Shown here in pieces: positions 2,550 through 56,449 of a stretch of 64,000 bases of DNA. The first letter of the stretch is position 1, and every line of letters begins with the position of its first letter. The notes below the pieces were generated by a model that was given only the letters and a program-made list of their open reading frames with translations, was not told the DNA's origin and did no database searches. The stretch spans positions 1,401,927-1,465,926 of the forward strand of contig OZ316898.1 of NCBI GenBank assembly GCA_973895155.1, written 5' to 3'. The translations under genes were made by a program, and so were the position numbers. This stretch comes from Marsupella aquatica. Lineage: Eukaryota > Plantae > Marchantiophyta.

Positions 2550-5500
2550 CTAATGAAAGAGTCGAACGGTCCGTGGACTCTGCCAACTACAACCCACAGC
2601 CCAATTGATAACACCTCCAATGTTTTGAAGGCTAGCGCATGCATTCACCTGTTGCAAAAGTAGATTAAAAGCCATTATGAGACGTTGCTACCGTCATTGC
2701 AAACTGAGCAGAATTTCTTACAAAAATTCTTCAGATAGGCAATCATTTGACAGCTTCTCTCTGAAAAGCAATGAGATCGTACCAGACTGTCAAGATCTCC
2801 TTCGATGTCGAAAATCATTATCCCCAGCCCCCTACTCTGATCAGTTTCAGCCTGCAAAAGAAATTTGTGTCAGTGACTATGAGATTCAATCCAAATAAAG
2901 ATTCCGCAGTCTGCAGTAAGGATATGAAAGTCGAGAGTTACGGGGAAAAAAGGGGTGGTAGATATGATTACTTACAGCACAAGCACAGATAAGCATTCCA
3001 GAGGCTCCCAAAAGTGCTGTGACCTCTGCAAGCATACCTGATCCAATCATATTCAGACCAACGTCAATACACCTCCCAAGGAGTTTCACCAATCCAATAA
3101 ATGAAGTATGCGGCTGTAAACTCATCTACCATGATTTCACACAGGCAATCCATTACAAGATTTTATGACAAAAAATTCTCATAAGCAAGCGACTTCATTT
3201 AGTGTCCCAAAAGCGCTAGGGAATGAACGGACTTATGAGAGTGCGGATATCATACGTTTTCGATCTACACAGCAGATACTTAGCCACTGGACCGAACGAT
3301 CTCCACTTCCATGCCACATTGCCACCCGTCCAATTTGCCATGCTTCAAATTTGGCCATGACCTCATCTTCAATGGTCATCCGCAAACTGGCTGTACTGGA
3401 ACTTATTCGAGCTGTTCCGTTGATGTATCCTCTACCTTGCTCTCCAAAGATCTCATCTATCAATTTACTGTGTTTCCCATTGACTGGTGTGCCATTGACA
3501 GGTGTGCCATTGACGGGTACCCCATTGACCGGTGTGCCATTGACCGGTGTGCCATTGATTCGTATACCATGAACTGACGTGCCATTGACTGCTGTTCCAT
3601 TTACTGCTACTATGGGTCCAGGAAAAGGATCAGCTGTCTTTATCCTTCCAGAACCTGAACCATTTGATGGGTACTCAATTCTACTTCTGCCATTCAGAAC
3701 CTCTTGAGCTCTGAGATTAGAAGACTTGTGAAGGATCTCTGAACCCGGATATGAGTCTGATTCATCATCATCAAAATCTGCCTCACAACCTGACTTAACC
3801 GCTGTGGTCCAGGACGCGAAATCCTCATCCGACTCTGAGAATTCGGAGACAAAGTCTTTCACACAGACCGCTGTAAGTTCCTCTGCTGACAATGTAGCTT
3901 GATCTTTTAAGAGCTGCGCTTGGTCTTTCAAGAACTGCACACACGAGCCAACAACTGGACTTGCATTAGCATGAACATCTTCAGAAACATGGACCGCAGT
4001 AGAAGAGCTAGATAAAAATCTAGATATGAAACACCCCGAGGGTAGTGAGATACTGAGAGGTGATCATGAATGGTACGTGTCAGATAGAATGACTAACGAC
4101 GTAGAAGGATGAGGAAAACAGCCAGCTCAGCTCCAACCACACATTGTCAAGCGCGCCTGGATTTGTCCTAGGTCGCTTATTTGGTTATCTAACTTCAAAA
4201 ACATCAAAATGAAAGTGCAGCAAAATGAAACAAATCATGCGGTGTGTAAGAAAGATATCTAAGGTTAACGTACCTTTGTGAGTTTATGGCGTGCACTGCG
4301 TGTCCTGGCAAACTGGAGCCACTGTCGGTGCAGCTCAAATAATTTCCTTTCGGAAGCTCCCTGCAATTAAATGTCGAGGATACGATCAAGATAACTTTCA
4401 AAGACAATTGTTCTGCATAACGATATTGAGCTTCTTATAATACCAAGTTCGTCACCCGGCTTGCTAGTGAGGAAAGAAATACAGGGAAGCCTAAATTTGC
4501 AAGCCTCGGGAAGCCACAATCTGCATGGTGGTTTTAGTCCACAGAACCCCAGCAATGCAATTTAAATCCAAGTGATCCTAATAGATTTGGGCAAGAACTC
4601 ACTTCATAAGTTACAACTTCAACGACTTCAGCATTTGCTAAAGTATGTGTTGGAGAGACAAGGTTGCCATTCACCTGCCAACATAGCATGAAATTGAGTA
4701 GTGGATTTCCTGTCAACATCCGCAGCAATGCAGTCTGAAAAGAAAGCATATCACAAAAAGTTGACTTTCTCACCTGGTCCAGTATGTCTTACGAACCCTA
4801 TACCATGGCGCTATTGTACAGGTTATTTTGGGGAGCAATTTTTGCAAAAAACTGCAAAGCCTGTCGAGGAAATCTGCTATTCAGGCAAAGAACGACATGT
4901 TATGACTCACCTTCGCTGCCACCATCTTGTTACCAACATCTGTGTGTATTTGGTAGGCGTAATCAACAACAGTTGCACCTTTGGGGAGGTTCTTGATCTG
5001 CAAGCAGCCGGTCAAGTACGGGAATGAATTCTTCCGAAGAGAACACCAACGAATCTTCAAACACTCAACCATAAGCAACAAGTTAATTAGGCAGAACTCT
5101 TCCATGTGATGTACACAGGATTGCATTCGACTTACCTCTCCTTTCGGTGTAAAAACAAAGACGCGACTGCCTAGTAAGTCACCAGTGATTGTGTCAACAA
5201 ATTCCCGGGATGTCATGTTACCGACAAACTCCTCCTGCCACTCTCGAATGGAATTCAACCAGCTCACCTGGAGAAGCTCCATCGTTAACAGGGGATAAGC
5301 GCAACAAAATAACAAGCTGCCCAATATAAATAAAGAAGAACGAAAGGGGTTGAGCAACAGAGGCAGCCAGTCCAATCGAGATAAAATACAGAAGCACCAC
5401 TGGACAGCTTACCCTGCGAGCAATCTCCGCATCGTTCAAATTGTTACTCCATCCACGACGAGCAGCCTCATTTGTCACACTCAAACTGTTTCCCGCAAAT

Positions 5501-8500
5501 GCTCCAATAAGGTCTGGATCAGACCCCCAGACCCCCTTTCCGCTATGGTGTGCAGCAATCCCCCATTCAGCAAGTTTATCCATCTCCTCTGTCCTAATCT
5601 ACATCATGGAAGACACCAGATGGAAGACACCACACTCTTTAGGCTCCAATCTCTTGAAATTTCTGTGTTTCACAAATAGACCTGTAGCATAATATCCAAG
5701 TACCTGAATCTCCAGAGGAAAATATGTTGCCGATCCAAATGGTATGACTGTCGTGTGAAGACTCTGATATCCATTTGGCTTTGGTGTGGCGATATAATCC
5801 TTTACCTGAGATAAACAAGATCCCAAAGATATTACGTCAACACCAAAAGGTCCTCCATAGTTAGTAAAGAACCATTAAGCCTGCTCTATACACTCTGTCA
5901 AATGCTGTAAGAGAAAACACACGTCACCTAATGAAGCTGAAGGGCTCTAAAGATACATAAAATTTAAAATTGTAACATTACCATTCCAGGGACAGGTGGC
6001 CACATCGCATGGACTAAACCAAGCACGTGATAGCAAACCTGCAATCGCAGCCATTCGGAAACAATTAGAAGCAGACAGTCTTCTCTACTCAGTCGAATCT
6101 GCCTGCGCTGGACCAGGCCTTGATTGCCACATCAGTCATCACAAGGAGTCTAGCGCTTAATTTAATAATTATTGACATGCACAGATGAAGAAATACCTGC
6201 TGAGCAGTACACAGTTTTCCCGTCGTGGCCCCTGGCTGTAATTTCAAGATCACTCTTAACTGCGAGGAATAACATTGTTATCAGACAAGCTAACCTATTC
6301 CAAAATCTTGGCAATATAAAATAGTATCATTTGTGATCCACCACAGACATCAAGTCCCTGATCGTAGACTGAAAAACTCAAATATCCACACCTGGTAATT
6401 CGAGAGTTGGCCATCAGAAGATTTAACATCGACTTTTGGCTCTGACAGGTCTGAACATGGAGCTACTAACAAAACTTTGAAACTTTGTGGAGAATGTCTA
6501 GACCAGCAAATGTCTAGTAGGAATTGTACCTGTGCAATATTTCGAATCTCGTCCATTGAGCATTTGGTGTCCCGCATCTTCTTATACAAACTGTACGCAA
6601 AAGCAAGGATTGATAATCCATGTAGAAGAAGTCATTAAATATTTTACAATACAGAAGTATCACTGGGGCTATATACAGATCTTCAGATCTGATAAATATC
6701 TCCACAAGATCTCTGTAGAAGAAGCCAAGGGCCTGAAAGACTGATTCCAAAATCATAACCTAGCAAACTTCGATACCTACCCAAAGCAAGAAGATAGAGA
6801 AAACTGGAGCTCGACCGTAAGAAATCCATCTGCTAGAACTCAGGTGGCGTCACAACTTTCCAGTACCTCTCGATGACACTTTAAGAGCCCTTAAAGAGTA
6901 GACAATGATCCAGCAATCTCTAAGTGGCTCTAAGTACCCATTACATTTGTGCTTATTTATACATACCTGTACAATTCTTTATAATGAGTACGGACTTTCA
7001 CGTCCACTGTAATGAAACCAAGAAACTGGTCCTTGTCTATTGTCTCCATTATCACTCTCCTGGCCTGAATTGCAAAACAAAGAAAAACATTATATCAACC
7101 TCATTAGTTATCAGGTAGAGTTCGAGGGACTATCTATCTAAGAAAAGACATGCATCACTCCTGCACTTCAATGGCAAAACCATGTATCTAACCATTAGAA
7201 TGAAAACCCGTATTTATATATTTGACGGTTGGGCATTAGTTGAATTGTGCCTGTATTACCTCTATCAAAACATCTTCTTGTTCTTTGCACAATATAGCAA
7301 CACGCTGCTTGAGGTTTGTGTAATCTTCCGCATTCGAATACAGGAATGATAGATCCTCCAGTTCCGACTGATACAAAAGAATAAAACCACAACAGTTCAG
7401 TGCTTGGTGATCGTCTCCACAACAGAATCTCACAAAAGGCATTCAAACCGAAAATCTATCTCGATTTTCTGCAAAGTCTTCAAAGCCTACTTCAAGACCA
7501 CACACCTTGATTCGATACATGCCCAGCAACTTTGCTAGGGGCGCAAATACTTGTAGGGTCTCTTCAGCTATGTATTGCTGCAAAAGTGATGAGGATCACG
7601 CAATCAAAACAGAAATCATGACATATTCATGAGAGGCCATCTAAAGAAAACACTCCATGAGAACAAGTCTTCACTGACTTATAAACATATCCAGAAAATC
7701 AACCTAAACTCATGGCAGAACCCGCCAAAACAATTCATGGCCTCGTGCATGCTCCATTTGAGTACCTGCTTGTGTGGAGGCATATGAGCTAATGTTCTCA
7801 TGTTATGCAATCGATCTGCGAGCTTCACAATGATTACACGAACCTGTTCACAGAGAACATTGAATCATCAAGCAGGTTGCCTAGTAACCAAGACTTTCCC
7901 TGGAGCGCTGACAATAATCAGCTGTCCTTTTCAGACCATGTCAAAAGCTGAAACACCTCCTGCTATTGAAGATTTCTCACCTAAGTCAGCAGACAGAATA
8001 GCCAGGGAGCTCTATCAAAATATCAAAAACCTTAGGAGCTCCACGCAGCACACAATGTCCACCGATATGCAGAAAGAATTTGTACCTCTTCAGTCATGGC
8101 AAGAAACATTTGCCTCAGATCATCAGCCTTCACATCTTGGCTCTTCGACCCACAGCTCGGACGTTGCATCTTCCCAAGTTTGGACACCTGCTTGGTAGCA
8201 AATTCCACTACTTATCAGATGACCTAGCAAGAAATTCTCTGATAGCGACCACTTAGAAAATAGATGTAAGTTTCAAGAGAAACTTCCACACGTGCCTTGG
8301 TTTCACCCTCCACTATGCGCCTCACAACCGATCCAAACTGTTGCTCGATCCTCTCGAATGTCACATGTTCTGTATCCTCGACGGTGTCGTGTAAAAGACC
8401 AGCAACAATAGTTTCCCAATCCATTTCCTGTGAGGTCAACAAACACGTCAGGCCGAAGTCCAAACCGCGAGTATGAACCTAAGGGCTTCAAGCTGAAGCA

Positions 8501-11117
8501 ACTGCATCCTAATGTTGTATATTTTCCCAGAGACACACGTGCCTCATACTAATACAGGTGCCCATTTGTTCACCTACAGTAAAGTTATCCCAGAAAATCT
8601 AAAAACAAGCCAGAAACCGAAAACAGAATAGTATGCAACAAGACTGATCCGGCAAAAAGGTGGGGAATCAGCTTACAAGTTCTCCCAGAATGTTTGCGAC
8701 TGCTACGGGATGGATGATAAATGGCTCTCCACTACGGCGCCTTTGCCCATCATGAGCTTCAAAAGCCAGCTGCATTTGACAACAAAGTACACTTGAGCTT
8801 GCACTTCGTACTCCGAGAACACATCCATTTCAGTTTTTAGGTAATTAGAAGAAGACAAGATATGGTAGACGCATACCTGCAAAGCATCATTGACCATGCA
8901 CAACTGAGCACCTGAAAGATAATTGATGGTGGGCTTCAAGGTCTGGACATCAAACATTTCACCAGATTCAGTCTCATGGCAACACTTCATGCAATATTAT
9001 AGATATGAAACTTCCTATTTTCGTCTTCTTCTGAATTTCGTTAAGGACTGCCCTTGCTACTTCCGCTTTGCTTTTGTGGGGTGAAGTCTAAGATTTGACT
9101 TCACCTTCTTCGGTTTTCCAGCTAAAATTCCAGAATTCAGGAAATATTCTCCAAGTAACGTGTACTCGATCAAAACCTCATTCATGAACACGTCAATGAA
9201 TTTCGGCAAATGTGTCTCCCCTTAGACAAAAGGACTAGTATACAGGAGACTTGTTGGGATGATAGGACCAGACATACACGTGTTTTGACATACAAGTACT
9301 CTAGCGTTGGATGTCACCTTTCAACAATCTCAAGTACAAAAAACAGCCATGAGATGTTCGTCACGAATCTTGAAGTTTGCATCTCACCTCCCACAAGGTT
9401 ACTGGAGTCACAATGCTTTCAAAGGATGTCTGTGCTTCTTTCCGTGAACCACTTTCAGGGGACGTCTGTGCTTCATTCCGAGAAACGCATTCAACTGTGA
9501 CTTGATATCTCGACTGCGATTTCTTTCCCTGGTCACATCCTGTTGAAGACTGGAATTGACCTCTTCGGTTCTCGGTACCCCAGATCAGCCCAGCTGAGGC
9601 CTTCCAGCTACACTCATCATGCTGCAGTAGAAATAATCATAGAGACAAAACGTTAAGGGACGAACAAGACATATAATATTTCCCTACAAATACATTAGAC
9701 GGAATTTCTAATGATAGTGCTCATGCAGTTTGATGTCCACTACAAATTCATTAAACGTGCTGCACATTTGCTAAACGTTATCTCTTACCCATAAGATAGA
9801 GAAATCTAGAAAGCACCAAGATTATACAAAGGAGAGTTCTTTCTTACATTGACATTGAGACGTGTTCTATCCTGTTTCAGCCATCTTCTGCTGTTACTGC
9901 AAACAGCAGATTGACTCGTACTTGTCAAACCACCACTTAAACAGCGAGCTACACAGCCCGGATCTACATGTTCTACTCTAACTACATGAGGTTGCGAGAA
10001 GTTCCGAAAGGGAGCAGGATCCGGACACCCTGCAAAACAATCGGTTGAGCGTCAGTAAGACTCCCGTAAGTTGGTAAAATGCAGCATGACGACACGGCCA
10101 AGGCACTTTACTGTTTCTCAAAAAGCTGCAGTGGAAACAAAGTCCCATCCCTATTAAGCAATAGTTTCCCGTGACCCATTCGTATTATAATACACTATTG
10201 AACACAGAAGCTTATTGTCTACATAATTTCAGGCCTGGCCCATGTATAAGCCCCCAATAGTGTACTCATGTGGTGAGTGAGTGTGCCCAAGAAATTTTCA
10301 AAATCCAAAGATACTTTGGGATTCAAATGACCACAAGAAATTCAGCATGCAAGAACAACCATAGCCACAGACCTACTTCAGCCAGGGCTGCTTAGAGCCG
10401 TAAAAATTGAAAAACAAGAGGCATTAATGGGACAGAGAATGCACCCGGTCAGGTACCAATTAGGTCTCAGTATAGCCAACAAGCGGGATTGAGACAAAGT
10501 ATTAAATTCCCTCCATCACATTCAGAATTAAGTACATAGAAACTATAAAATGAGGAGAGACAGAGGTGATACCGATAAATCCAAAATCTTAAACAGGTAG
10601 GACAGGTTGTGCCACGAGTTCATAGATTAGACTGAGAAAGAACTCATGGTTCTAGTGAGCGGCTCGAGGTAGCAAGGGCACTAAACCCTCCGTTATGTGA
10701 AGGCCTGCCGAATAGAGCTGCTAGGCTCTAAAATTACTTATGGTGACATGACAAGCCGGAAAGATGGATAATTCACTGACCTGACCCAAGTCCAGGGTGT
10801 CATGATTTAAAAAGCTCATGCATCCCAGAAAAGTATGAATCTATGGGTCCAATACACAGAGGAGTGGAACTGAGAATGGAAACTGACCAGAAAATCGGAT
10901 GGGCCGGGCCATGTCTCAAGATTAAGGCAGTCAAGACCACAAAACTTGACAACGACTCCGACAAGAAAATGAGGAGCGCAGCTTCAACATGCCAAAACTG
11001 ATGAGGGTGTCCCTGTCACCATTATTCCATCCCATACTCACAGCTGCCCGCTCGATACCATACGACGTCTAACAACCTGTGAGTAGCCTCCAAATATCCC
11101 CTGCTTAGATACCTCAT
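2550..11117 (-). CDS. RSH1: RelA/SpoT homolog, plant RSH1 clade ((p)ppGpp hydrolase; HD, synthetase-like, TGS and ACT domains), 24 coding exons, ~998 aa
   Basis: Hand-spliced exons (minus strand): 11117-11042 (tentative first exon), 10029-9848, 9621-9388, 8942-8877, 8769-8677, 8427-8296, 8187-8086, 7843-7766, 7577-7506, 7367-7260, 7064-6967, 6590-6530, 6259-6197, 6038-5982, 5805-5704, 5598-5413, 5267-5136, 4997-4911, 4674-4603, 4360-4274, 3934-3256, 3037-2976, 2851-2783, 2648-2550. The total is 2997 nt and stays in frame. Motifs: AHDGQRRRSGEPFIIHP, AGLLHDTVED, KLADRLHNMRTL, KDYIATPKPNGYQSLHT, EIQIRT, TGS (VFVFTPKGE..LPKGATVVDYAYQIHT..AKVNG) and ACT (DRKRMLAEVT...). The start codon is less certain than the rest. 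Confidence 0.93.
3477..3609 (-). repeat. In-frame 15-bp coding minisatellite (~9 units, (V/I)NGTP) within RSH1 exon 21
   Basis: CCATTGAC(C/T)GGTGTG units, translated as VNGTAVNGTSVHGIRINGTPVNGTPVNGVPVNGTPVNGTPVNG. Confidence 0.92.
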
Positions 11118-11842
11118 TCAAATTCGTTCCTTCCTCTTGACCCTGCCTTGGCGTTCCTTGTCCTACCGTTACAAGTAACCAGGTTCAATCTTTATCTTAG
11201 AAGGCCTCCAACTCTCAACCAAGGTGACCAACAATATAAGCTGTCGTTCTCCCTTCACCCCTGTGAACCGTTGACCGTCAATTGGAACTCCGCTCAGCCT
11301 CATCCTGCCGTGCGAGTATCTCCTCCGCAACTGTTTACCTTCCCCAACCACAATCTACCGTCTGCCTGCTTTCTCGCGCTTCGAAACATTGCAATTCCCA
11401 ATCCAACTCCTACGTAGTGTTCTCTGTCTACCTCCACCTCTGTCTCTTTCCATATCCGAGACTGAGGGTATCGTTAACACCAACGGAAAAAGATCTCGGC
11501 TACAAGGTGAATCGCTTGTGCACTTTCCGCCACAGTCAAACACCAGTCTCGCTTCTGCTTCCTAGGTCAGAATTACTACTGGAAGTCCCTGCTTTCAATC
11601 TTCCACCGCCTGTTCCTCTTCGACCCCTCACTCCCTCTAGTTTATCAACGAAGTCCCTCTGCTTTCAGTCTGCCATCACCGAGAACTCCTCTTTGATTCT
11701 CCTCAACCGTCAATCCAGCTGGAGATTCATGGTCTGTTCTCTCGTTTAGTATGCTTCGCCTCCTTTCTCGTCCTTTGACAGCTAGCCTGAACAATAGAGC
11801 AAACAAGCCATAGATGCTGTTTGCTCCGTATATCGAAGACCT

Positions 11843-11889
11843 CACCTCACCTCAACTCAACTCAACTCAACTCAACTCAACTCAACTCA
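11843..11889. repeat. (CTCAA)n microsatellite
   Basis: Directly visible pentamer run. Confidence 0.9.
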
Positions 11890-12179
11890 CAAACCGTGCT
11901 CTGATCCAGATTCCGGATTCCTCCTCTTTGCCCGTCGCCTTTCCTCTTGGTTGCAACTCCTAATTCAGCTCATCAGCAGCCTCGCCATGGACAAAGGACC
12001 TGCTGCTGCTCTCCTCCTCCTCGGGTCGACACTCCTTCGCCTGCTCGACCAATTCCCTATCAGCTGGCTCTATCTACCTCTCCTTCCTTCCGCCTAATTT
12101 CGACAGACTGGTACCCTTCAGCAGTAGTGTTGGCAGCTCCTGCTACGTCTCCCTGCTGTGCTTCCTCCGGGCATGGCCC

Positions 12180-12645
12180 ACTCTCTCACTCACTCTCTCA
12201 CTCACTCACTCACTCACGCACTCACTCTCCCGTTCGAACGTCTTCCCTAGAGCAACAATCACTCGCGGTACACGCTCTCTGCGCGGATTGTGTGGATTGC
12301 AAGGTGTGAACGAGCGACTGAAATTCCACACGAATTACGAGGGAGTCAGTCGCTCCGGCATGCAATTAACCTGAAGCCCTAATACACACAGACTAGCACG
12401 CAGGCACAGGAGAAGCAATCCCTGTCGAAAGCCGAGCGTAGCAAAGCAGCAGCAGCCAGGCGAGCGAGTGCTGTGCTGTGCTGTGCTGTGCTTTTCACTC
12501 ATCACTCTTCTTCTCTCTCCTCTGTTCTCGTCTTTTTGCTCGCTCTTGTTTCTCTGGCTTTGCCGGAGTTTCCGCGTCTCTCTTTCTCTCTCTCGTCTCT
12601 CTCCCTCTCTCTCTCTCTCTGTCTCTCGCACACCTTCTCTCGCTC
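12180..12645. repeat. Cluster of simple repeats: (CTCA)n 12180-12228, (TGCTG)n 12468-12491, (CT)n 12575-12625; upstream of RSH1
   Basis: Directly visible. Confidence 0.85.
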
Positions 12646-12838
12646 TTTCGCCCAATCCCGATCGACAAGCGAGAAACTCACGGACGGATTTATCAAACGT
12701 GGACTTCTTGGACGGAATTCTCTGTGACTAACGGACCGGAGAGGCTGCGAGACCTACGGTACTCGTCTACACTCTCCAGTATTAGTCTGAACAGTAGTGT
12801 AGTGTACAGAAGCCCTTCTGTGGTGTTGACAGAGGCTC

Positions 12839-13320
12839 GGATGGATGGATGGATGGATGGATGGAAGGGATGGGTAGAAGGGATGGATGGATGGATGGAT
12901 GGATGGATGGATAAAAGGGATGGGTAGAAGGGATGGATGGATGGATAGCAGGGATGGATGGATGGAGGGATGGGCGGATATATGGATGGACGGATGGATA
13001 GCAGGGATGGATGGATGGAGGGATGGGCGGATATATGGATGGACGGATGGATAGAAGGATGGATGGATGGATGGACGGAGGGATAGGTGGATGGATAGAG
13101 GGAGGGATAGGTGGATGGAGGGATGGAGGGATGGATGGAGGGATGGAGGGATGGATGGACTAATAGATGGATGGTATTGGATAGAAGTATGGATGGATGG
13201 GAAAGTAATGGATGGGTGGAAGAAGGATGGATGGGAAAGTAATGGATGGGTTGAAGAAAGATGGATGGGAAAGTAATGGATGGGTGGAAGAAGGATGGAT
13301 GGATGGACGGAGAATGGACG
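12839..13320. repeat. Degenerate (GGAT)n microsatellite, ~480 bp, purine-rich
   Basis: Long run of GGAT/GGAA/GGGA variants with higher-order duplicated blocks. Confidence 0.95.
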
Positions 13321-14123
13321 GGCGGGATGTTGAGGATATGCTCCGAATTTTCTTAGTTTGAGTACCTTTGTAATGTAATATTACGCAGAAGATATTTGTG
13401 GTGTTGAGCCATTATAGGAATCTGAGGCTCACGATATTCGGATGAATTGTTGGAAGACTCATGGACCATTTTGAAGCGTTGGTTTTTACCCAAATGGCAC
13501 CTTTTCTTTGTGTAGATGCTGACAGTTCAAGGTATCAAAGGTTACCTGGTCTACTGGAGTGGTGAGATCAAACCTTACGATCTATCAGACCATCAGCTTC
13601 AGAGAAGTGTGCTTGGATGGGGATCTTCATCCAGTCTTTGAACTCTGATAGTACCAAATCCAAACTGGGTGCTCATCATGGTGTTCACATTAATGTACTT
13701 CTGACTTCATAAAATTTAGTTTTACAAGTCAACTAGGAAAAACCCACCTGCTGCCAACAAAGTGGATCTTGCTTATGGCAGACACCGACATTGAATCGAG
13801 GGTAGATAGTGGCAGATTGTGGAAAGAGATTGAGAAACTCCCCACAACAGGCATTTGCATTCATCAAGGATCTTTCATGTGTGCATCCCATTGGTACACG
13901 TTGACTGAACGAAATCTAGAACATAATTACATACTGGTTGTATAATTAAAAAATCAAAAGGGAAACCCTGCCCCGGCACAACTTGCAAAGAGTCTTGAGC
14001 ATGGGAAACCCCTCAACTTTACAAAAGAATACGACACACATTAAGGATGAAACACTCAAAATCAGTCAGCACCATGCACCAAAAGGGCCAACAAATGTTC
14101 CTGGAAAGGGATAATCTCAAATA

Positions 14124-14576
14124 CCTGTGATTTACTATTTTGACGCTTTTATTGTCGTAAAATAGTACCTTGCCATGTTTTTGATATTATTTACTAGAAT
14201 GTCACCTTTTGTTAGCAATGGTCAAGTCAACAACCTATGATTAACTTATAACCATTCACCTGTAATTTCCAAACAACAAGAGATTAATTTGGAAATCTCT
14301 TCATGGCGTAATTTCCAACAGCAAGAGACGGTGGGCAACGCAACTGGTTACTCCTTCAGTTGGGGCAGAGCAGGTTGGATAAGGATTTTTTTAGGGAAAT
14401 CCCTACCATTGGATGCAGACATGTGGCATGATTTCAGGCGTCAGATGCTTATGAATTAACGACAGGTTGTTAACTTGACCATTGCTAGAAAAAGGTGATA
14501 TTCTAGTAGATGATACAAAAAACATGGCAAGGTAGTAATTTCACACAGAAAAGGTGGCAAAGTAATCAATCTCAGG
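14124..14576. mobile_element. MITE-like fold-back with ~130-bp imperfect terminal inverted repeats
   Basis: TACCTTGCCATGTTTTT...TACTAGAATGTCACCTTTT..TAGCAATGGTCAAGT is mirrored by ACTTGACCATTGCTAG..AAAAGGTGATATTCTAGTA...AAAAACATGGCAAGGTA. ATA flanks both ends. Confidence 0.75.
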
Positions 14577-16192
14577 ATACAAAGATATGTTTGAGATACC
14601 TTATTTATTTCACACCAATAGAAAATCTTGCACCTGGCTTGTTCAGTTCTTTGAGCAAAAATGCCTTATTCCAAGTGTGACTTCAAACCCCAGGTTTGTC
14701 TTTGGATGGCTCTTGGCGCTATCTCAAAGGGCACAGCACCCAGAAATTTGAAGGTGGAGATTATATTCAAAGATGGTTGGGAGGTCTGGGAGTTGGGAGT
14801 CAGTGCACTTGGAAGGAGGCCCTAAGGGCTCTAAAGTGACCACTTGCAAGAGACCCCAAGAATTCATTGAAGTTTGGCTAATTGGATCATGTCTTGTTTT
14901 TTAGTGGCTACTTATATGGAGGACTGGCTAATTTAATTGAGCATGCATAATTGGATGGAAATGCATTGGACAACTTACTGTGAATCAATTCTCAAGTTCA
15001 GCTCCAGCGTGGCGATGGTTTTGCGCCAAACTGTGGCAGGTTTTAATGTGTTATGCTCATAGACACTTTTACAGTTCATATAAAAAATAATTAAATTTTA
15101 AAAAAAATGCTCATGGGCGGTTCCCCTTTTTTTATTTTTAAAAAAAGGCTGTGGATATATGTGTAGGCTCCTGCTGTAGACAAGTGGCAAGACATTATGG
15201 CCAAAGAGAGAGCGAGAAATATCTGAGAAGGTAAGGATGATATGAAGGCCAACAAGCTATGGACTGATGGATGTCCTTGACAAACGGAAAAAAAAGGTCC
15301 TTAACAAACGGAAGAATTGTTCTAAGCATATTTGAATGCTATGATGATTACCCCATTTGGAGGGAGTAGGCCATGATGACGACACACCTCGATCAAGCAT
15401 GAAATGAAAGGAGAGTGAGCGTAAAAATAAATTACCATTTTGAGAATGCAAAGAGATTTTATTTTATAATGTAGAAATGAAATGAGTAACTGTAGCTATT
15501 ACCGTGTATACCCAAACTTGACAGACAATGGTCAAAGGTTTCTTTTCTAAGGGACAAAGAGTTAGCTCCATTATCTAAGTTTTGAAAATTGTAAACATTT
15601 CAATCCTTAAGCTAGGACAGGATTACTCAGTACTTTCTATGGGATCCTTGGAAACATCCATTTGAACCAGGATAAATGAATTGAGTGTAAAATACCTTTC
15701 CTTTCATACAAAGAGAATTTTGTCATTCCCACGGGATATCACAGGTTTGGATGGAAAGCCCATCCGAGCTTACCAGAGGCAAAATTCATTAGCTCCAAAA
15801 TTAATTTATTTTTAACTCCATAATTCTGCTCACTAGTCCTTATTGTGAGGTGTTTTTTCCTTTTTTGTTATGACAATCCCCATGAGTGATGGTGAGATAA
15901 AGGGGGCAGAGGGAAGCAGGGCATTCTGGAGGTGTACGTAGACAAAGGAAAATGAGAAACGGGGATTTACAAAGTGCTCCACTGCCAATGAACCCATAAT
16001 TGTGCTCCAATAGCCCTCCTATAAAGTTAGGGGCCCAGGCAGGGCATAAGCCCATCATCAGCAGGCATTATGTGTGGTCATGTCCAACATTATGTGTGGA
16101 TAGAAGGCCCTGGGAGATGCGGTCGTTGGTGATCTTCATTGGCGGGGCCATATTTTGCAATTACTGTCCATGTAGCTCAGGAAGGAGGCATA

Positions 16193-40185: not shown

Positions 40186-40808
40186 ATGGGTGGGTTTCTC
40201 TTTCATTCCCAAAACACAAGAAAAGTAGTTCATCTCATTGACTTTCATTCGTGTGGCTTCTTTCTTTTCTTTCATCAATTGTCTTTATGCTCTACACAAC
40301 ACCCCTAAACTAAGCTTGAACCTTTTGCATGGTAATCCAATACTGATCCTTTTGGATATAGTAGGGCGTCTCAAAGTAGGGGACGGCCAAAAAGTTACGG
40401 GAACTGTCTGGGTCCCGTAACTCAAGTTACGGGACAAAATAAAGGCCACAACTTGCGATGGGGTTTCAGCTTTGACCCGAACCGTTAGGCATGACTTACG
40501 GGTTACAGCCCGCTCAAAGTTGAGCGCCCATTCTTTCCCTCGCCCATCACAGATCGTCAGGGGCCTCGTGGAGATGCCACATCAACTACATGTTTAGAGC
40601 GTATGCCTTGAATCCATCCGATGCTCACTACTCCTCATCCAGAACAGTAAGGAGTTCAAATCAAAATTTGAAAGGATTCAAACTCCTGCGTCGTTTATAA
40701 TTCATGAAACCTGAAATTTAGCACTTCTCAGTTGAAGAAATTTATGTCTTCATCGTTGCGCATCCAAGATAAGCAGAGCACACATTCAATTTGGAATTCA
40801 TATTGACA

Positions 40809-42450
40809 ATGAGGACTTCAGACAGCCATGTTGCTCCAACATATAAGAGCGTAAACGACGACTGTGTTCTCCCACAATCTCACAACTCTTCGAAGGCATT
40901 GGCAATCTCACTTGAAATTTTTTATGATTATCAGTCTGAGTTTCCAAGTGCTGAAGTGAATTTGCCAAGGCCCGATCAATTGCAGCAAGCTAACATGGCT
41001 AATTCAGGAAGTGCAGGATTTGTTAGGGGCAGAGGAAGTTTCAATCCTCCACGACCTGTACCAAGCGGAGGGAAGGAGACAGCTGACAAGTTCCGTTTGA
41101 AAGATCAAGACTATGAGTTGATTGTTAGCTATTTGGAAGTGCCAGAAAATTTCAACGCCATTCATGGTGCAGGGAAGAAGACGAGGGTGGGTGGCAAGTA
41201 CCAGAGCAAAGCTACTGTCTTCCGCCAGATGTTGGCTGCACTGCAGCACCATGGATTTCCCAAAGAAATCAGCGCCCCAAATTTGACTAAACGATTTCAG
41301 CGTTTTGTCAAGCGTTACAAAGATGCTAGGGATGTTAAGTACCAGTCTGGTGGAGGTCTCACCGATGACGATTTGAGAATCGGTTTGACATTGGAGGACA
41401 AGCTGAATCGGCTATGCCCATACTTTGAACGAATGCATACGATCTACGGAGAGAGACCCAATGTTGCCCCAAAAGTCCTTGGAGATGTTGGAGTCGAAGA
41501 TAGTGACCTTGTCATGCTTGAAGAGTCGGGAGACACCGAGCAATACTTGCAGTTTGGTGAGGAAAACCACTATCCGAATGTCATCCCACAACATTCCCCA
41601 ACTATTATCCTCGAAGGTATTTAACTCGATCTTTAGCTTGAACCTGTCATGTTGGGTGCAAGGCTATGATGTCATAAGCTTTGTTTGCAACGAGTAGAGA
41701 CGAATAGTAACCAGATTATTCTCTGATTTTGTTCATGCAGATACACCAGCGCACTCCGAAGCTGAATCTCTCCATACGACTCCCCTGGAGGCACCCACGC
41801 CCGACACCCTGAACAAGCCACCGTCCACAGACAACTTTTGGCAACAAATGGAGAACATTGCTGCGCATAACATCCACATCCTTTCTGATTCATGTCAGTG
41901 TCACCAGTGCAAGACCTACGTGAGGCCTGAGACTGGAGATAGTCGACACCTCCCCACTGGTAGTGCAACTGGAGCCTACACCCCCTTGCAGCCTCGCAAG
42001 GACAATGTGCAACCCACCCCACCGAGACCACCACCACCTAGGGCGTCAAAATCAGGATCGCAAGCAGCAAAAGATGGGCAGCAAAATAGGAAGCCATCTT
42101 TCTCAGCTATTTATGCTGACAGGATAAATCAGAAAGCTGATTATCGAAAGGAGCTAATTCAGTCAAGGGACAAGTGGAAAATGCACGGCCTTGAAGAGCG
42201 TCGTGCTGCTAGATTGGAGGCTCGTCAGGAAGCTCTGGTGAAGCACCGCCTGGACCGAAAGCATCAACTTGCTTTAGAGGAACTTGCTCATCAGAATTCG
42301 CTCAAGAAAGTGAAAGCTGAGCAAGAGCATGCAAAGGAGATGCTAAGAGCTACTCAGCGATAGGCTTTGCTCACTACTCTTATTGGCAGCTCCAAGACCC
42401 CAGAGGAGCTCAAGACATTGCTGCCCATTGTTGACGTAGAGTACAAGTAG
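40809..42450 (+). CDS. Harbinger accessory (Myb/SANT-like DNA-binding) ORF, two exons, probable premature stop at 42361
   Basis: ORF 40791..41624 (LKDQDYELIVSYLEVPENFNAIHGAGKKT...KLNRLCPYFERMHTIYGERPNV) splices via GT 41617 / AG 41740 in frame to ORF 41848..42363 (coiled-coil). The frame continues past TAG 42361 to a second stop near 42450. The start could be ATG 40809 or 40995. Confidence 0.75.
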
Positions 42451-43114
42451 TAGATTTCAGATAGCAAAGATTTGTTCTGAGATTGTTACCTATCTGGTTC
42501 CTATCAATATGTAACATTGGCCATTACTGAAATACAAGTAAATTATGTCGAACTCAGAGTCAATCAAACTTCCACATTTAATCCTACTTATTGTATGCTG
42601 CAAGAACTCTTTCACACATTTCAGTGTATAGAATTACATGGCGTTTATGAACTTTCCTTAAGTCCACAAGTTGATGAACACATTTGAAGTCCACCGAAAT
42701 AAATTTAGATCCAAAATCCGGGCCAAAATCACTACAGACTCAAATGGCGCCTTCGCACTTCTACTTGCAACAATGCAGTTGAACACTCTATGCCTAAAGC
42801 CGTATGACGTACTGCAAATCCTCAAATTCAGTTTATTGCTCTTTGGCTCCGAGTTCACGTTGGTGCTAGAACAAAGTTGAACCCTACCATGTTGTACTGA
42901 GGGTTGTAGCAATCGACAATTACCAAACGACAACAAAGTCTTTGGAAACCAACACTCAAAAAATGTGAGTGCTTCAAATTAATGATTAATGTTTATGGGT
43001 CTCCCCAATTACAAATAGAACAGTCATCAAAGATGACGTTTTGACTGTACCTTGTCATTGGCTATGCACTAAACTAACCATATGAAGCGTGACTACTTCC
43101 ATGCTATGGTGGAC

Positions 43115-44601
43115 TTAGCTTGTACGCACATTCAAACAACCACCCGGTTGCTTATGAAATCTCATGGCATATTCCATGACATGGTTTTGCAACATCAACC
43201 AAGATGCTTGACGATTCCTTCTTGGATTTGTTGGCAAGTTACGATGCTCCTCCTGTTCCGCATCACTGTCTGAGTCATGGTCCAGAAGGATTTCTGAATC
43301 CTCTTCAGTCCACAAGTCATTACGTCCAATGACGTAATTGTGCAATCTTGCACACATGATAATCCATCTAATTATCCACTCAATCTCCTTCTTAGACCTC
43401 AATTGGGTACGCATCTCTCTCAGGGAATGCCACCTTGACTTCAAAACACCAATGCAATGCTCATTAGTTACCCTACACTTTGCGATACACATGTTGAAGT
43501 CCTCCCGCTCCTGGCTTGTGTCAGCCCTCTTGTATGCAGACACCATGTGATCCATGGGCTCATATCCACTGTCACCCAACAAATACTGCCCACGACTAAA
43601 CAAATGGCCGTCATTTTGGTTTCGGCATAGTGATGATCTCTTGTAACAGGTGAGATCAGAGACAGACCCTGGCAATCCTGGAAAACACCAAACCAAAAGT
43701 CTGTGAATATAATAATTGGAATATGTAGGATCAAAGATATAAATAGATATAACAGTGCCATTCAAGAAAAATGGATTTATGGAGTCAGTTCATACCAGTG
43801 AATAAGTACAGGATTTTTCGCTTGTAGTCACACACGACCTGGGCATTGATTGAATATCTACACTTTCTATCAAAATAACACTCCCCAGATTGTGCTGGGC
43901 GCTGAGAGAGAGGAATCAAAGTGCCATCAATAAGCCCTACACATCCTGGAAAACCTTTCTTGGAAAACTCATGAGCAATTACTCTGCGCTCAGCCATTTC
44001 TGGCCATTTCAAGTAACCCTTCAATGCATCCTCCAGGGCTCGAATTGCATAGTGAGCCATTAGTTACGCCCCAGGTTGGAATTAAACGATTCAGGCAGGA
44101 TCCATTGCCTTCGTGGCCCAAACGATCCAAGGTAACAGCAAGTTGGCACTCTATAGGAGCCTGTTCGTTCTGTGAGTTGCTATAGAAAACAGGGTGTTGG
44201 TCAATTTGGTGAACCAATGCAAAGAAAGAAGCTTTGTCCATCCGAGTCATCTGCCGAAAAATCAGAGGAGGGAGCTTGTCAAAATACTGTAAAGCAAACT
44301 CTCTTGATTTACTTGTTATTGTCTTGTCAGCAAAAAACCTGGTGCTCTCCATCATGGCATATAACTCCATCAGCCCATGTGGAGCACCCTCCAATTCAAG
44401 TATGTCAGTCTCATCTTCTGAATCGTCTGATGAGTACAAATCATCCTCCGAATCAGAATTACACAGTGTCAGGTCGTCCAACGACTCCACTTCGCTACCT
44501 GATGTGTCAAGGCCATCATCCAAACTTTCTAGAAGGATGTTCAACACCAGCTTATCCCGCACAACCTGCAATTCCTTTTGACGGTATGATAGTCGAGGCA
44601 T
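43115..44601 (-). pseudogene. Harbinger/HARBI1-type DDE transposase, frameshifted
   Basis: Acidic N-terminus, then FRQMTRMDKASF...QLAVTLDRLGHEGNG, a frameshift near 44050, then GFPGCVGLIDGTLIP, YSINAQVVCD, an intron (43795-43678), LPGSVSD, YLLGDSGY, RVTNEHCIGVLKSRWHSL and CARLHN. The D-D-E triad is present. Confidence 0.9.
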
Positions 44602-44918
44602 GTCGTCCCTGCACTGAGTTATTGGAATGACAGGTTCTGTGATGAACACTAGAGAAAGGTCAGATGATGTTAGAGGAATTCATAACAATGCTACAAAATT
44701 GAACTTCCCATGATAATTGAAATTCAAAAGCCTTTTGAAGCAAATACGTTCACATGGGAGGAAGTCGTCACAAACTTTATACAACTTTGTTGTTGCCAAT
44801 TAAAAAAAACCTGGCAACAACTATTTATTACATAAGACATCATTGACGAGATTGCCTGTGGTATGGACACTTGGTTTAGCCACGCACAAGTATAAAAAAT
44901 GAACACATACAAGTTCGC

Positions 44919-45653
44919 CTACTCATCCAGATCAGAGTACTTTAAAGCCCTAACCAGGTCCTCTATAGCTTCCTTCACAGGTTTTCCAACTTTTTTCTTG
45001 GACTGGTTTGATGTGCTGCCATGGCTTTTTCCTGGTGAATGGGGAGTCAGCCGTTCACTGTGCTTCAAACTACACTGTGGAGACCTGAAGCATGTTTCAA
45101 GGGCAGGGGGAATATGCACTGAAGGACGTTCATCAAAGAATGTAAAATGCTGAACTTTGATTTGAAATTCTGAAACAGAAAGCCAAATCTTCACTCTTGG
45201 TGAATCCTGGGTAATGGAATGCAAGTACTCGGTTTGAGCTTGCTCATTGCATGCAAAGAAATCATTTGCAGTGCAGTCTAGGAGAATCTCTCCAGCAGCC
45301 CAAAGTTGGGCAGTGATGGGTCGTGCCTCCCCATGGATTGCATCAACAAGTCGAATGCCAAATCTGAAGGCATACGTCCCTGGGAGGTTGTGATCACACT
45401 TAGGTCCAAATTTAAGAGATTTGGCACACAAGCGTCCAGTTTCGAATCTATGAGGGCATGCAGAGTACAGAAATCTTCGAGGATATGGATTAGGAGCTAC
45501 ATAGTTCACAATCCAAGCTAGAGAAGGAGCAAATACAACACTTGCTCCAGCAGCCCTTCTTTCCTCCACAATGCCAAGTGAGGTCCATGAAACTATTTTC
45601 AACTTCTGCAATCCATTGCCAGAGTACTCAGTTGACGGAGTCGCAACAATCAC
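44919..45653 (-). CDS. Third ORF inside the Harbinger element: RPA1 C-terminal (DBD-C)-like zinc-binding OB-fold protein
   Basis: 244-aa open frame containing FLYSACP...LCAKSL...KCDH...YAFRFGIRLVD...AQLWAAGEILLDCTANDF. This follows the Rep_fac-A_C pattern (YxACP-C-K..C..YR....l.D....F...gE.llG.sA). Recognised by eye; the start codon is unclear (GTG). Confidence 0.6.
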   Translation of the reverse strand: MIVATPSTEYSGNGLQKLKIVSWTSLGIVEERRAAGASVVFAPSLAWIVNYVAPNPYPRRFLYSACPHRFETGRLCAKSLKFGPKCDHNLPGTYAFRFGIRLVDAIHGEARPITAQLWAAGEILLDCTANDFFACNEQAQTEYLHSITQDSPRVKIWLSVSEFQIKVQHFTFFDERPSVHIPPALETCFRSPQCSLKHSERLTPHSPGKSHGSTSNQSKKKVGKPVKEAIEDLVRALKYSDLDE

Positions 45654-48600
45654 ATATTCATTGCACGGTACAACAATTGCAGATGAGAGACCTTCAGATG
45701 TGTCACTTCACCTTGGAAATCTTGAGAGCTGGCTTGTCAGCCGCCGTCGGTGGAGCTCGACCTTGGCTACGCTCAATCTTGGCTACGGTCGATAAATCAA
45801 AATCTTGGAGTCGCCCGATGTTGGCTATGCTCGATCGAAATTCTTGGCTATGCTCGATCAAAAATCATGAGATCGCCCTCTTGGTCATCAAGAAACCGCT
45901 GCACAATGCTCTGGCGAAATGTTACAGCAACTTTCACGACATCGCCCTCTCGGACATCGACAGTCACTCACAATGCAGTTGGGAAGAATGCAGATACACC
46001 TAAGAAGTAAGAGTGCGCATTGGCACCACACTCAAAAGTCACGTACGTACGTCCAAAATGGTGCACAGTGTTCGCGCCAGTGAGGGCATGCCCGTTACCT
46101 ACAGCACACGGGGTATGGGCAGTGGTCACGGCGTCAAATTACGGGAGCCTGTTTTGGGCTCCCGTAAGGGTTACGGGAATGTCCGTAACTTTTTAGTTAC
46201 GGAAGTGTGTTAACGGGCCAAACCTCAGCTCTGAGACGCCCTAGTAGAGACTTAATGCACATCCTGGATAAGGTTTATGTCTTGGCATGAGCTACAGTAG
46301 TTCCAGATGTCTTGTTGGAACATTTCTTCAAGTTTAATTGAATTTTTTTGGCACATGCAACCCCTTGACACTAGGCAAATGAAAAGGTCGTAACTTATCC
46401 TATTTATTCAAAGTGTCTATAATGTTACACCTTTGAATTATCCTGACAACTGCTGATGGTAATCTAACATCAACTATTTTGGATAGGGTTAATGTTTGGG
46501 CATAAAGTAGTTGAAATATCTTGCCGGAACCTTACTTCTAGTCCAAGTTAGAATGTTTCAGGCACATAGCACATCACCTTCACAAGGTTCCAGCAAAATG
46601 GCCTCGATCCTAACTTATTTTGTTTTTATTGAAAACATGCTTTGCTGACAAGTGAAAGGCTATAACAGAAATGAACCGGAACTACAGATGGTCCGTTACG
46701 GCTGAGGGGCCCTCCTACTTCAAGACTCATCCTGAGAGAGGAGAGGGTGGGGCAATCTATCTTAAATCTAAAACGCTATTGTACTATGAAACCCACTCAT
46801 ACCTGGCCATTTGTGAGGTACATTGCTCTGCTAACGTTAAGTTTAATTTTGGGATTCTGATTGTTATTTTGTCTGCTAGTGTTCAATATTCCTTTCCTAG
46901 TGCTTTCCTTTTGATCACCCTGTCGGGCTCCCTTCTTCTTCGTAGCTTCATATAGATATACCTCACTTGTCCCTTCCATATAAGCCTTTGTTTACTGTCT
47001 CCATCACATATTCTTTCTTGACTATGCAACCTCCATCCTTAGTTATCATCAAAGTTCACCAATTGGCTTGCAACTTCAACCTCCACGACAGAGAGAAGAG
47101 ATATAATTGCAAAGAGTCCAACAGACAATGGGCAACAGCATTCAAGAGCCATGGCAACTTCTGGTTTTGCACAAGAAAAATAATTACTAGAGTCTCAGAT
47201 CCGAATGACCAAATTTAAGACAGCTTTTATAGGACAAAGATGTTGATGCGGATGTCAAGAATAAACAAAGCATCTTCATGTGAAAACTGATTATCAATGT
47301 ATATACATTCTTAAGGAAAAAGTCTGGAGTTAACTTTTCTGGCCTTGTGCGATAAATTGGATTGTGCACACCATAAACCCTTCATGACAACTTGGTTCAA
47401 AGCACAACAAAATGAAAAAAAATAATGTTTCATGCTGATGTTTTGCAAAGATGAAAGCCGTTACAGTATTTAAAAAGGAAATATCTTCCTTGTTAATTAA
47501 AATAGGGAGGTGTGCATTGTAGTCTTGGGCACCATTAGGAAAGTGCCCCTCTTATCCACTGACATGCAGATTGAAGTGAGAGATTTGGTGTGATCAGCTT
47601 TGCTTGAGCCACTTGGCTGATCCAAACATGGATGGAACAGGAAGGGGTGCCTTGCCTCAAGACAAGAGGACAAACAGTCATGTAAAGAGTACATCATTCT
47701 TGTGTGGCACTACAGTGTAGTTGAGGGCTTATCCACAATGCCTTCAGATGCTGAGAAAATGGAGGGCTTATCCACTAGGCCTTCAGATGATGAGAAAAGG
47801 GATGAAAACAAGGTGAGATATAGATGGTATTGTCATTTAATGAAACATCACACCTGTTACTCCAGAGAGCTCCCATAAGGTAGCCCCTCAAGCAACCTAC
47901 CAACATTGGACGTGTCTGAACTGAGAGGGCAATTGATCAACAATAGCAGCATGAGTGATGTTGAATGACCATGCCATGCGATAAGAGTGTCAGAAGGCTG
48001 AAGAGCTGCTTTGCCAACATCTACAGTAGCTCACCAAAGAGGAGCAGCCACAAAGCAGGAATAAAAAAGATGGAGGTTGGTTGCATATCTGTATCAAGAG
48101 CAGGCCCTACACCAAGTACAAACATTGTTGGCAGGGCAGGAATTTGTGGCATTACATTGAAAAGGGAATCTGCCAAAGAAGACTGCATTCCATGTCAAAC
48201 ACAGTTTTATACAACTAGCCTGAGTGCATCTCCTTGGGAATGTAAATACAGGTGAGTATAGTCAAGCTCACTATGCCGTTTTCATAGACCACATTGCCCC
48301 CAATCCCAGTATTCCACTTGCACCCCCAACTTCAGTTATGTCCCAAGTAGCAGTCAAGAGGTTTACTCTAGACCACAGGTTTTGAAGGGTACCTTTCAAT
48401 CACAAATGAGTGGTTAGATTTAGAGTTTGGGACAAAGAAAACACAGAAGGCCTCCGATGTCAACCAATGCCAAAACTTATAGAGATTACAGAAATGCCCA
48501 TGCAAACTTTTCTTTTTCACACCATGATGGAGGGTTTGAAAAGGAGTCTTTTCTAGTGTCCCATTCAGTTACAGCGCAGGATACAAACACGTCAAACTTT

Positions 48601-56102: not shown

Positions 56103-56449
56103 AGGGCGTCTCAAATCATTTTAATTTTATGTTTTGGGGAGCTGCTCCAAGAAATTTATGTTGCCCACCCTGATCTCTAAAACTGAACCCACAAGTTTTT
56201 GGTTTGAGTCAGGTTGCAACACCCCCCGAGAGTGAACTCAATATCATCAATTTCTTGGATTTGGTTGTTTTCTCTGAATGGTGCTGAAGTCATTTGTGAG
56301 AAATATTTTGTTGTGCTTACACCAGTTGCACTGAACTCCCCAGCCTCCCCTAGTTAGGGGCGGTAGAATGTTTTGGGGACCACAAATTTTTGACCCGTGA
56401 CCTGGCCTGCAACATCCCGGGTCAGGGAACAGTTGGTTTGAGACACCCT
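56103..56449. mobile_element. MITE-sized element sharing termini with the 40363..46242 Harbinger
   Basis: AGGGCGTCTCAAA ... TTTGAGACACCCT (12/13 inverted match). The left end is identical to the big element's left TIR. No clean target duplication. Confidence 0.6.

Follow-up and report, generated by a model that had tools for sequence, protein, structure and literature searches.

Elements of the Pangu group of the PHIS superfamily (Han et al. 2015) have an ANT TSD and a TIR starting with AG, and the published members contain two ORFs and have a mean length of ≈3.5 kb (PMC4482050). PIF/Harbinger-type elements are described as two-gene systems. Accessory proteins of TIR transposons include MURB (MuDR), VANB/VANC (VANDAL) and the Myb-like protein of Harbinger, for which transposase binding, anti-silencing and end recognition have been established (PMC12973397). 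Within the searchable literature, RPA-like transposon genes are known from Helitrons only, by way of references in PMC3627910, where “RPA70-encoding Helitrons in zebrafish” (Repbase Reports 2007) is cited. When the literature was searched for Harbinger, Pangu or MULE elements with an RPA or OB-fold gene, none came up, which is not proof of absence.

The window analyzed here, i.e., the whole stretch of 64,000 nucleotides from the liverwort Marsupella aquatica, contains a transposon of the Pangu type with a third gene, which is predicted to encode a zinc OB protein and is referred to here as the OB gene. The element and its borders, motifs and other two genes are as follows:

40363..46242, minus strand: Pangu-type PHIS DNA transposon of 5,880 bp, recognized by its TIR pair, flanking AGT and DDE_Tnp_4
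40360..40362 (left copy) and 46243-46245 (right copy), no strand: TSD, AGT, read directly from the sequence
40363..40377, plus strand: left TIR, AGGGCGTCTCAAAGT, from a TIR pair search and reading
46228..46242, minus strand: right TIR, AGGGCGTCTCAGAGC, the 5' end for the OB gene and transposase
46170..46202, no strand: three subterminal CCGTAAC/GTTACGG motifs in alternating orientation, with a matching trio at 40394-40432, just internal to the other TIR
43115..44601, minus strand: Pangu DDE transposase gene with its own start, MPRLS, from Pfam (DDE_Tnp_4) and comparison with L003, L010, L011 and L012
40995..42363, plus strand: second canonical gene, weakly Myb/SANT-like, in ORF pieces 40995-41624 and 41848-42363, convergent with the transposase

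The element was assigned to the Pangu group by its TSD, TIR and transposase domain. The flanking 3-bp duplication has the ANT form (AGT in the window element; ATT in the sister elements L010, L011 and L012), and the TIR consensus, AGGGCGTCTCA(A/G)AG, is present at 40363 on the plus strand and at 46242 on the minus strand, with both ends falling among the 11–40 bp TIRs starting with AG or GG that characterize the group. Two ORF pieces matched DDE_Tnp_4 (E 6.6e-20 and 3.6e-6), as is seen in PIF/Harbinger/IS5-type DDE transposases. The ANT TSD, the AG-start TIR, the DDE_Tnp_4-type transposase and a second ORF without a clear domain are thus all shared with the Pangu group. Compared to the published Pangu elements, however, the liverwort lineage is longer, at 5.9 kb, and has a third gene. 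When the window element is read on the minus strand, the order is TIR, OB gene, transposase gene, Myb-like gene (on the opposite strand) and TIR.

The transposase gene is represented by three ORF pieces on the minus strand (44649-43990, 44060-43785 and 43765-43115). It has a single frameshift near 44035-44045, where L003, L010 and L011 have one continuous frame. A gap of ≈100 bp at about 43685-43790 is also found in L003 and, by this comparison, is likely to be a short intron. The second canonical gene gave a Pfam match to Myb_DNA-bind_4 at E 0.021, under the cut-off, and its two pieces are 56% and 40% identical to their counterparts in L003. (The transposase and Myb-like ORF pieces were searched one by one, without joining of exons.)

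The two subterminal trios account for six of the ten CCGTAAC/GTTACGG matches in the 64-kb window, in the whole of which ≈2 would be expected, and these heptamers are probable binding sites for a protein of the element. Elsewhere in the window, at 56103-56449, there is a unit of ≈347 bp without a long ORF, whose inverted ends, AGGGCGTCTCAAATC and AGGGTGTCTCAAACC, resemble those of Pangu elements and whose flanking triplets, ACG and GTT, differ from each other. This unit is probably a MITE of the Pangu group.

The OB gene itself comprises the following parts:

44919..45653, minus strand: ORF of 244 aa from the ORF listing, flanked by the right TIR and the transposase, whose pieces have the same orientation
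44919..45596, minus strand: homologous coding region of the OB gene, 225 codons plus a stop at 44919-44921, aligned with P0001-P0010 and the loci described below
45597..45653, minus strand: 19 upstream in-frame codons, with no homology to relatives and low pLDDT

The earlier note had quoted three motifs from this ORF (YSACP-x8-CAK-x7-CDH, then YAFRFGIRLVD and AGEILLDCTA), all of which were found with the spacing given. The 244-codon frame opens with GTG and contains zero Met codons. Because the 19 upstream codons lack homology and have low pLDDT in the model, they are probably non-coding. The relatives all start with M-V/A-x-W-T-S-L, and the codon at 45596-45594, which is ATG in the family, is ATA (Ile) in the window. 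The start codon of the window copy has therefore been lost, barring an unseen 5' exon. An AATAAA follows 3' of the OB stop, both in the window and in L001. Since the transposase is frameshifted and the OB start is lost, the window copy is considered to be decayed. The same note had described the core frame as still open and both canonical ORFs as damaged: the frame is open and the transposase is indeed broken, but the OB start is gone, and the Myb-like gene showed no break where it is homologous. A tblastn search found no second copy of the ORF within the window.

The OB frame in the window was scored by the family HMM at E 3.8e-67. A profile search of 1.84 billion representatives yielded 103 cluster representatives at E ≤ 1e-3 and 54 at E ≤ 1e-10; the family members are mostly 200–270 residues long. 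All named members are from liverworts, either Calypogeia fissa or Riccia sorocarpa, and the named relatives of the transposase, Riccia fluitans included, are likewise all from liverworts. A word-index protein search with the 244-aa ORF gave one relative, P0001, with 47% identity, and a 59-sequence profile again gave one. The P0001 gene, on a 939-bp contig, runs from an ATG of its own to its own stop, after which comes AATAAA. The metagenome scan with close alignment confirmed no locus, and the protein-atlas search gave only OB/RPA/POT1/MEIOB-like leads and unnamed fungal clusters.

In 21 pairs of OB genes, pN ranged from 0.28 to 0.51 against a pS of 0.69–0.82, which is saturated, and identity was 49–71% at codon positions 1 and 2 compared to 31–45% at position 3. 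This conservation of replacement sites in the face of saturated pS shows that purifying selection has maintained the frame through a long period of divergence. Judged from these sequence comparisons, the OB ORF family is a real conserved gene family.

The predicted protein has three recognizable parts:

45123..45596, minus strand: RPA70 DBD-C-like OB core, residues 20–177 of the 244-aa frame, from the model, Foldseek and VIA
45390..45458, minus strand: zinc-ribbon insert with putative ligands C66, C76, C86 and H88 (CCCH), aligned on the Cys motif of yeast RPA70
44940..44978, minus strand: C-terminal amphipathic helix, residues 226–238, a helix in the model and conserved

The AlphaFold2 model of the 244-aa ORF, made from a 59-sequence alignment, had a mean pLDDT of 84.8, rising to 92–98 over about residues 20–180. 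When the model was compared to the PDB with Foldseek, the best eight matches were all RPA70 DBD-C (E 1.1e-4 to 9.9e-4, probability 1.00). Superposition with VIA-align gave a Z of 13.0 for 4gop_C (135 residues aligned, rmsd 2.8) and 12.2 for human RPA70C (1l1o_F, 22% identity), and the DBD-C superpositions as a whole had Z scores of 12–13 and rmsd values of 2.3–3.0 over 135–139 residues.

As a single sequence, the 244-aa ORF gave no match to PDB sequences. The family profile, on the other hand, matched the C-domain of yeast RPA70 (E 0.001) in an alignment that covers the Cys motif, Y-R-F strand and next helix region. (The second match of this profile, at E 0.013, was human C18orf21 (UPF0711, 9uh7_K), with the Y-x-F strand running into a Ser/Thr/Pro-rich tail; this match may be compositional.) The window OB frame stayed below the Pfam gathering threshold for Rep_fac-A_C (PF08646), with zero matches at E ≤ 1, whereas among its relatives Rep_fac-A_C was found in 5/59 (E ≤ 0.1, best 3.8e-7) and CDC24_OB3 in 6/59. 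The note's claim of a zinc OB-fold protein of the RPA1 type is borne out by the model, by the Foldseek and VIA matches to RPA70 DBD-C and by the profile match to yeast RPA70. As a prediction from model and alignment, the RPA70 DBD-C-type zinc OB fold of the protein holds.

The putative zinc ligands are kept in most relatives (C66 in 88/91, C76 in 85/95, C86 in 89/94 and H88 in 82/91) and constitute a predicted four-ligand site in a ribbon inserted between strands 1 and 2, of the CCCH and not the C4 type. F98 is invariant. Position 118 is F or W in 82/86 relatives, and the profile alignment sets it on the strand of RPA70C that carries the DNA-stacking Phe; we take it to correspond to human F532. 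Between the OB core and the C-terminal helix is a Ser/Thr/Pro-rich linker that has low confidence in the model. The helix contains an E/D-L-hydrophobic-x2-L motif that recurs across the family.

The protein shares an OB barrel with an inserted zinc ribbon with RPA70 DBD-C (Rep_fac-A_C; 1L1O C/F, 4GOP C and 6I52 C), and common to both is the pattern Y-x2-C ... C-x-K ... C, followed by Y-R-F/Y ... D ... aromatic ... L-L-G-like ... F. The identity to RPA70C structures is only 15–22%, however. The ligand spacing is C-x9-C-x9-C-x-H in the OB family and C-x4-C-x13-C-x2-C in RPA70, and instead of the trimerization helix that is directly attached in RPA70 there is a helix at the far end of a long disordered linker. 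Unlike the multi-OB RPA70 subunit, which trimerizes with RPA32 and RPA14, the OB protein, with about 210–230 aa, has a stand-alone single OB of ≈160 residues, without DBD-F, A and B. The DBD-C-type fold is also found in Teb1 OB-C of Tetrahymena telomerase (3U50; VIA-align Z 12.9) and in POT1 OB3, CTC1 and Cdc13 (Z 8–9 for POT1/TEBP), but these are domains of large host telomere proteins, whereas the OB protein is small and transposon-borne.

As in Helitrons with RPA-like proteins, which are known from plants and zebrafish, the transposon carries its own RPA70-derived OB-fold gene. The two are set apart by the features of the elements: Helitrons, which have Rep/helicase and neither TIRs nor a TSD, move by rolling circle via ssDNA, whereas the OB gene is carried by a cut-and-paste element of the DDE type, which has TIRs and a 3-bp TSD, and a Pfam search of six of its ORFs found no Rep or helicase domain. 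In being an extra, lineage-restricted protein that is encoded by the element next to the transposase and varies between sister elements, the OB protein resembles MURB, VANB/VANC and the Harbinger Myb-like protein (PMC12973397). The main text of that paper ascribes an OB fold to none of these, and their roles are established, whereas the role of the OB protein is proposed. Within the searchable literature, including the references in PMC3627910, RPA-derived genes of this kind were known before in Helitrons, and their occurrence as an accessory gene in a Pangu-type element is new.

Several related elements allowed the distribution of the OB gene to be compared:

L003, Logan contig of 5,965 bp: OB gene present, 45% identical; TIR at 244
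L011, Calypogeia fissa: OB gene at 5973-6559, unannotated; TIR at 5190 with ATT; transposase at 6995-8388
L014, Logan contig: OB gene at 783-1562, with the transposase directly after it
L010, Calypogeia fissa, 5253-14725: OB gene absent; intact TIRs and ATT TSD
L012, Riccia fluitans: OB gene absent; intact TIRs and ATT TSD
L013, Riccia sorocarpa: a family HMM hint of the OB gene, at E about 0.5 only

L003 has all three genes: the OB gene, the transposase gene (60–74% identical) and the Myb-like gene on the opposite strand (40–56%). The OB gene lies upstream of the transposase and co-oriented with it, at a distance of 120–440 bp, in the window element, L003, L011 and L014, and it is located inside the 5' TIR in the window element, L003 and L011. 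The OB proteins of the four Pangu elements, including that of the window, are 36–54% identical to each other. That position and orientation are the same despite this degree of divergence indicates long co-inheritance with the transposase under purifying selection. In L010 and L012, no trace of the OB gene was found between TIR and transposase by tblastn, by the six-frame family HMM (E ≤ 1), in the ORF listing or by blastn/tblastx, and the gene is therefore dispensable, lost or lineage-restricted, and not constant in the family. (L010 is 9.5 kb long, its transposase and Myb-like genes being separated by ≈3.7 kb of additional sequence.) Thus, the description of the element as a three-gene Pangu/Harbinger transposon stands insofar as a conserved third gene recurs in four elements, but does not extend to the sisters L010 and L012, whose TIRs are the same. 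Likewise, the proposed check that the gene would always be present in TIR-bounded copies with dN/dS < 1 fails in its first part, in those two elements, while pN is below the saturated pS.

Members of the OB family are also found outside Pangu elements. In L008, a MULE transposase with a SWIM finger (MULE domain, E 7.8e-9) is followed by an OB member 0.3–0.6 kb further downstream, and the same type of MULE-linked OB unit is found in L006 and L009. In L007, from Riccia sorocarpa, an OB member is located a few kb from a MULE transposase homologous to that in L008. For the MULE-linked elements in L007 and L008, a search for inverted repeats failed to reveal the termini. In a quick tree of 77 family members, from which 27 short rows were left out, the backbone was poorly resolved; the two MULE-linked groups formed separate clades (SH-aLRT 98–99), apart from the Pangu-linked members.

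Other members stand alone. L001 and L005 are ≈930-bp contigs with only the OB gene, and L002 and L004 contain solo OB copies without a nearby transposase. In L002, from Calypogeia fissa, the P0003 OB gene (8001-8681) has no transposase within 8 kb and is located between 66-nt direct repeats at 6449-6514 and 10131-10196, which are 95% identical and lie 3.7 kb apart; tandem repeats are present upstream, and the repeat-flanked stretch may be a separate small unit carrying the OB gene. In L006 (1-6820 and 7333-8930), the OB unit is truncated. Other ORFs on that contig have fibronectin type III domains and one has a weak DSCAM-like match, and the host may be a non-plant.

Taken together, we consider it probable, at roughly three chances in four, that the window ORF is the decayed accessory gene of one liverwort Pangu lineage, encoding a zinc OB protein that is most likely a binder of ssDNA or DNA ends with a docking helix. 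The intact protein would be translated from its own start to its own stop, from a gene between the 5' TIR and the transposase gene, and would have about 210–230 residues, in which a single RPA70 DBD-C-type OB bearing a CCCH zinc ribbon is joined by a disordered Ser/Thr/Pro-rich linker to a short conserved C-terminal helix. As the zinc site and the aromatic residue at the position of the RPA70C stacking strand are retained, the OB cleft most likely serves to bind ssDNA or DNA ends, and the cleft and the zinc ribbon together would hold them. The tethered C-terminal helix would most likely dock to a partner, which could be another protein of the element or a host factor of the RPA32/RPA14 type, and binding and docking together could aid transposition intermediates or the repair of the donor-site gap. 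Since relatives accompany MULE transposases as well, a generic role involving DNA or host factors is likelier than a chemistry specific to Pangu. A complex prediction that combined the N-terminal piece of the L003 transposase, the Myb-like ORF and the OB protein had a score of 0.00 and counts neither way.

DBD-C-like folds are not proof of ssDNA binding, since those of POT1, Cdc13, CTC1 and RMI1 serve protein–protein contacts. We therefore considered the possibility that the OB protein is a protein–protein adaptor and not an ssDNA binder, its OB surface and C-terminal helix joining a host complex (RPA32/RPA14) or the proteins of the element, where it would serve as a decoy or recruiter. By analogy, it might resemble the C-terminal OB folds of POT1, TEBP-alpha, Cdc13 and RMI1, or the trimerization face of RPA70C. 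The conserved tethered helix and the association of the family with two unrelated transposase types would fit such a role, and the structural neighbors that rank below RPA70C are indeed adaptor OB folds (POT1-TPP1, Z 8.9; Pot1-Tpz1, Z 8.6; RMI1, Z 7.4, with the remaining OB folds at Z 7–9). However, the DNA-binding RPA70C and Teb1C lead by 3–4 Z units, and the zinc ribbon and the aromatic at position 118 are conserved. An adaptor is thus possible, but on the unlikely side. We find it harder to regard the OB gene as a selfish passenger cassette of various transposons (Pangu, MULE and others) that plays no part in the transposition of its carrier and promotes its own propagation or has a host-directed effect. 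Such a cassette would explain why sister Pangu elements that otherwise seem complete lack the gene and why L002 and L004 have solo copies, but position and orientation are constant in four Pangu elements whose OB proteins have diverged to 36–54% identity, and no separate ends were seen around the OB gene inside the window element. We consider this reading improbable.

The location of the OB ORF on the same strand as the transposase and 120–440 bp upstream of it, in 4/4 elements, could also mean that it is an exon of the transposase gene, and the earlier note had suggested looking for splicing to a transposase acceptor at 44649. Such splicing need not be invoked: the transposase frame opens with a conserved start of its own, MPR(L/I/V)S, and the OB frame is closed by a conserved stop. 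In every copy this stop comes directly after the conserved C-terminal motif, with AATAAA next in L001 and the window; the Met start of the transposase is conserved also where the OB gene is missing; and the OB gene occurs alone on the ≈930-bp contigs L001 and L005. The exon reading was rejected on the conserved OB stop and the separate transposase start, and we give it very little credence. A neutral fragment of host RPA1 or of a nested Helitron, kept open by chance, is the least credible of the alternatives. RPA-like genes are known as Helitron cargo (Repbase reports cited in PMC3627910), but the TIRs and TSD are present and none of the six scanned ORFs has a Rep/helicase domain, and a nested Helitron was rejected on these grounds. 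Neither does the gene look like a piece of RPA1: it encodes one OB, between a start and a stop of its own, and is only 15–22% identical to RPA70C, and among the 103 relatives there is one protein of RPA70 length, a 675-aa protein from Riccia. Moreover, replacement sites were conserved against saturated synonymous sites, and the locus was kept in four elements. Origin from host RPA1 was rejected because of the low identity, the past selection and the single OB, which is bounded by a separate start and stop.

With the OB ORF taken as an accessory gene of the Pangu lineage, the family accounts for a set of liverwort “hypothetical proteins” as transposon genes, and an RPA70C-like gene in DDE elements would represent a new class of accessory factor. 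The OB gene would offer a handle on how DDE elements manage DNA ends, gap repair or host surveillance, and the small size of the protein makes it suited to purification and to tests of zinc, ssDNA and partner binding. More tentatively, and with more doubt than assent on our part, the stand-alone RPA70C-like zinc OB family might be an accessory module shared by several cut-and-paste superfamilies (Pangu, MULE), binding ssDNA or mimicking RPA and thereby coupling DDE transposition to host replication and repair. If true, this would point to an important ssDNA step in transposons whose movement has been regarded as involving double-stranded DNA only.
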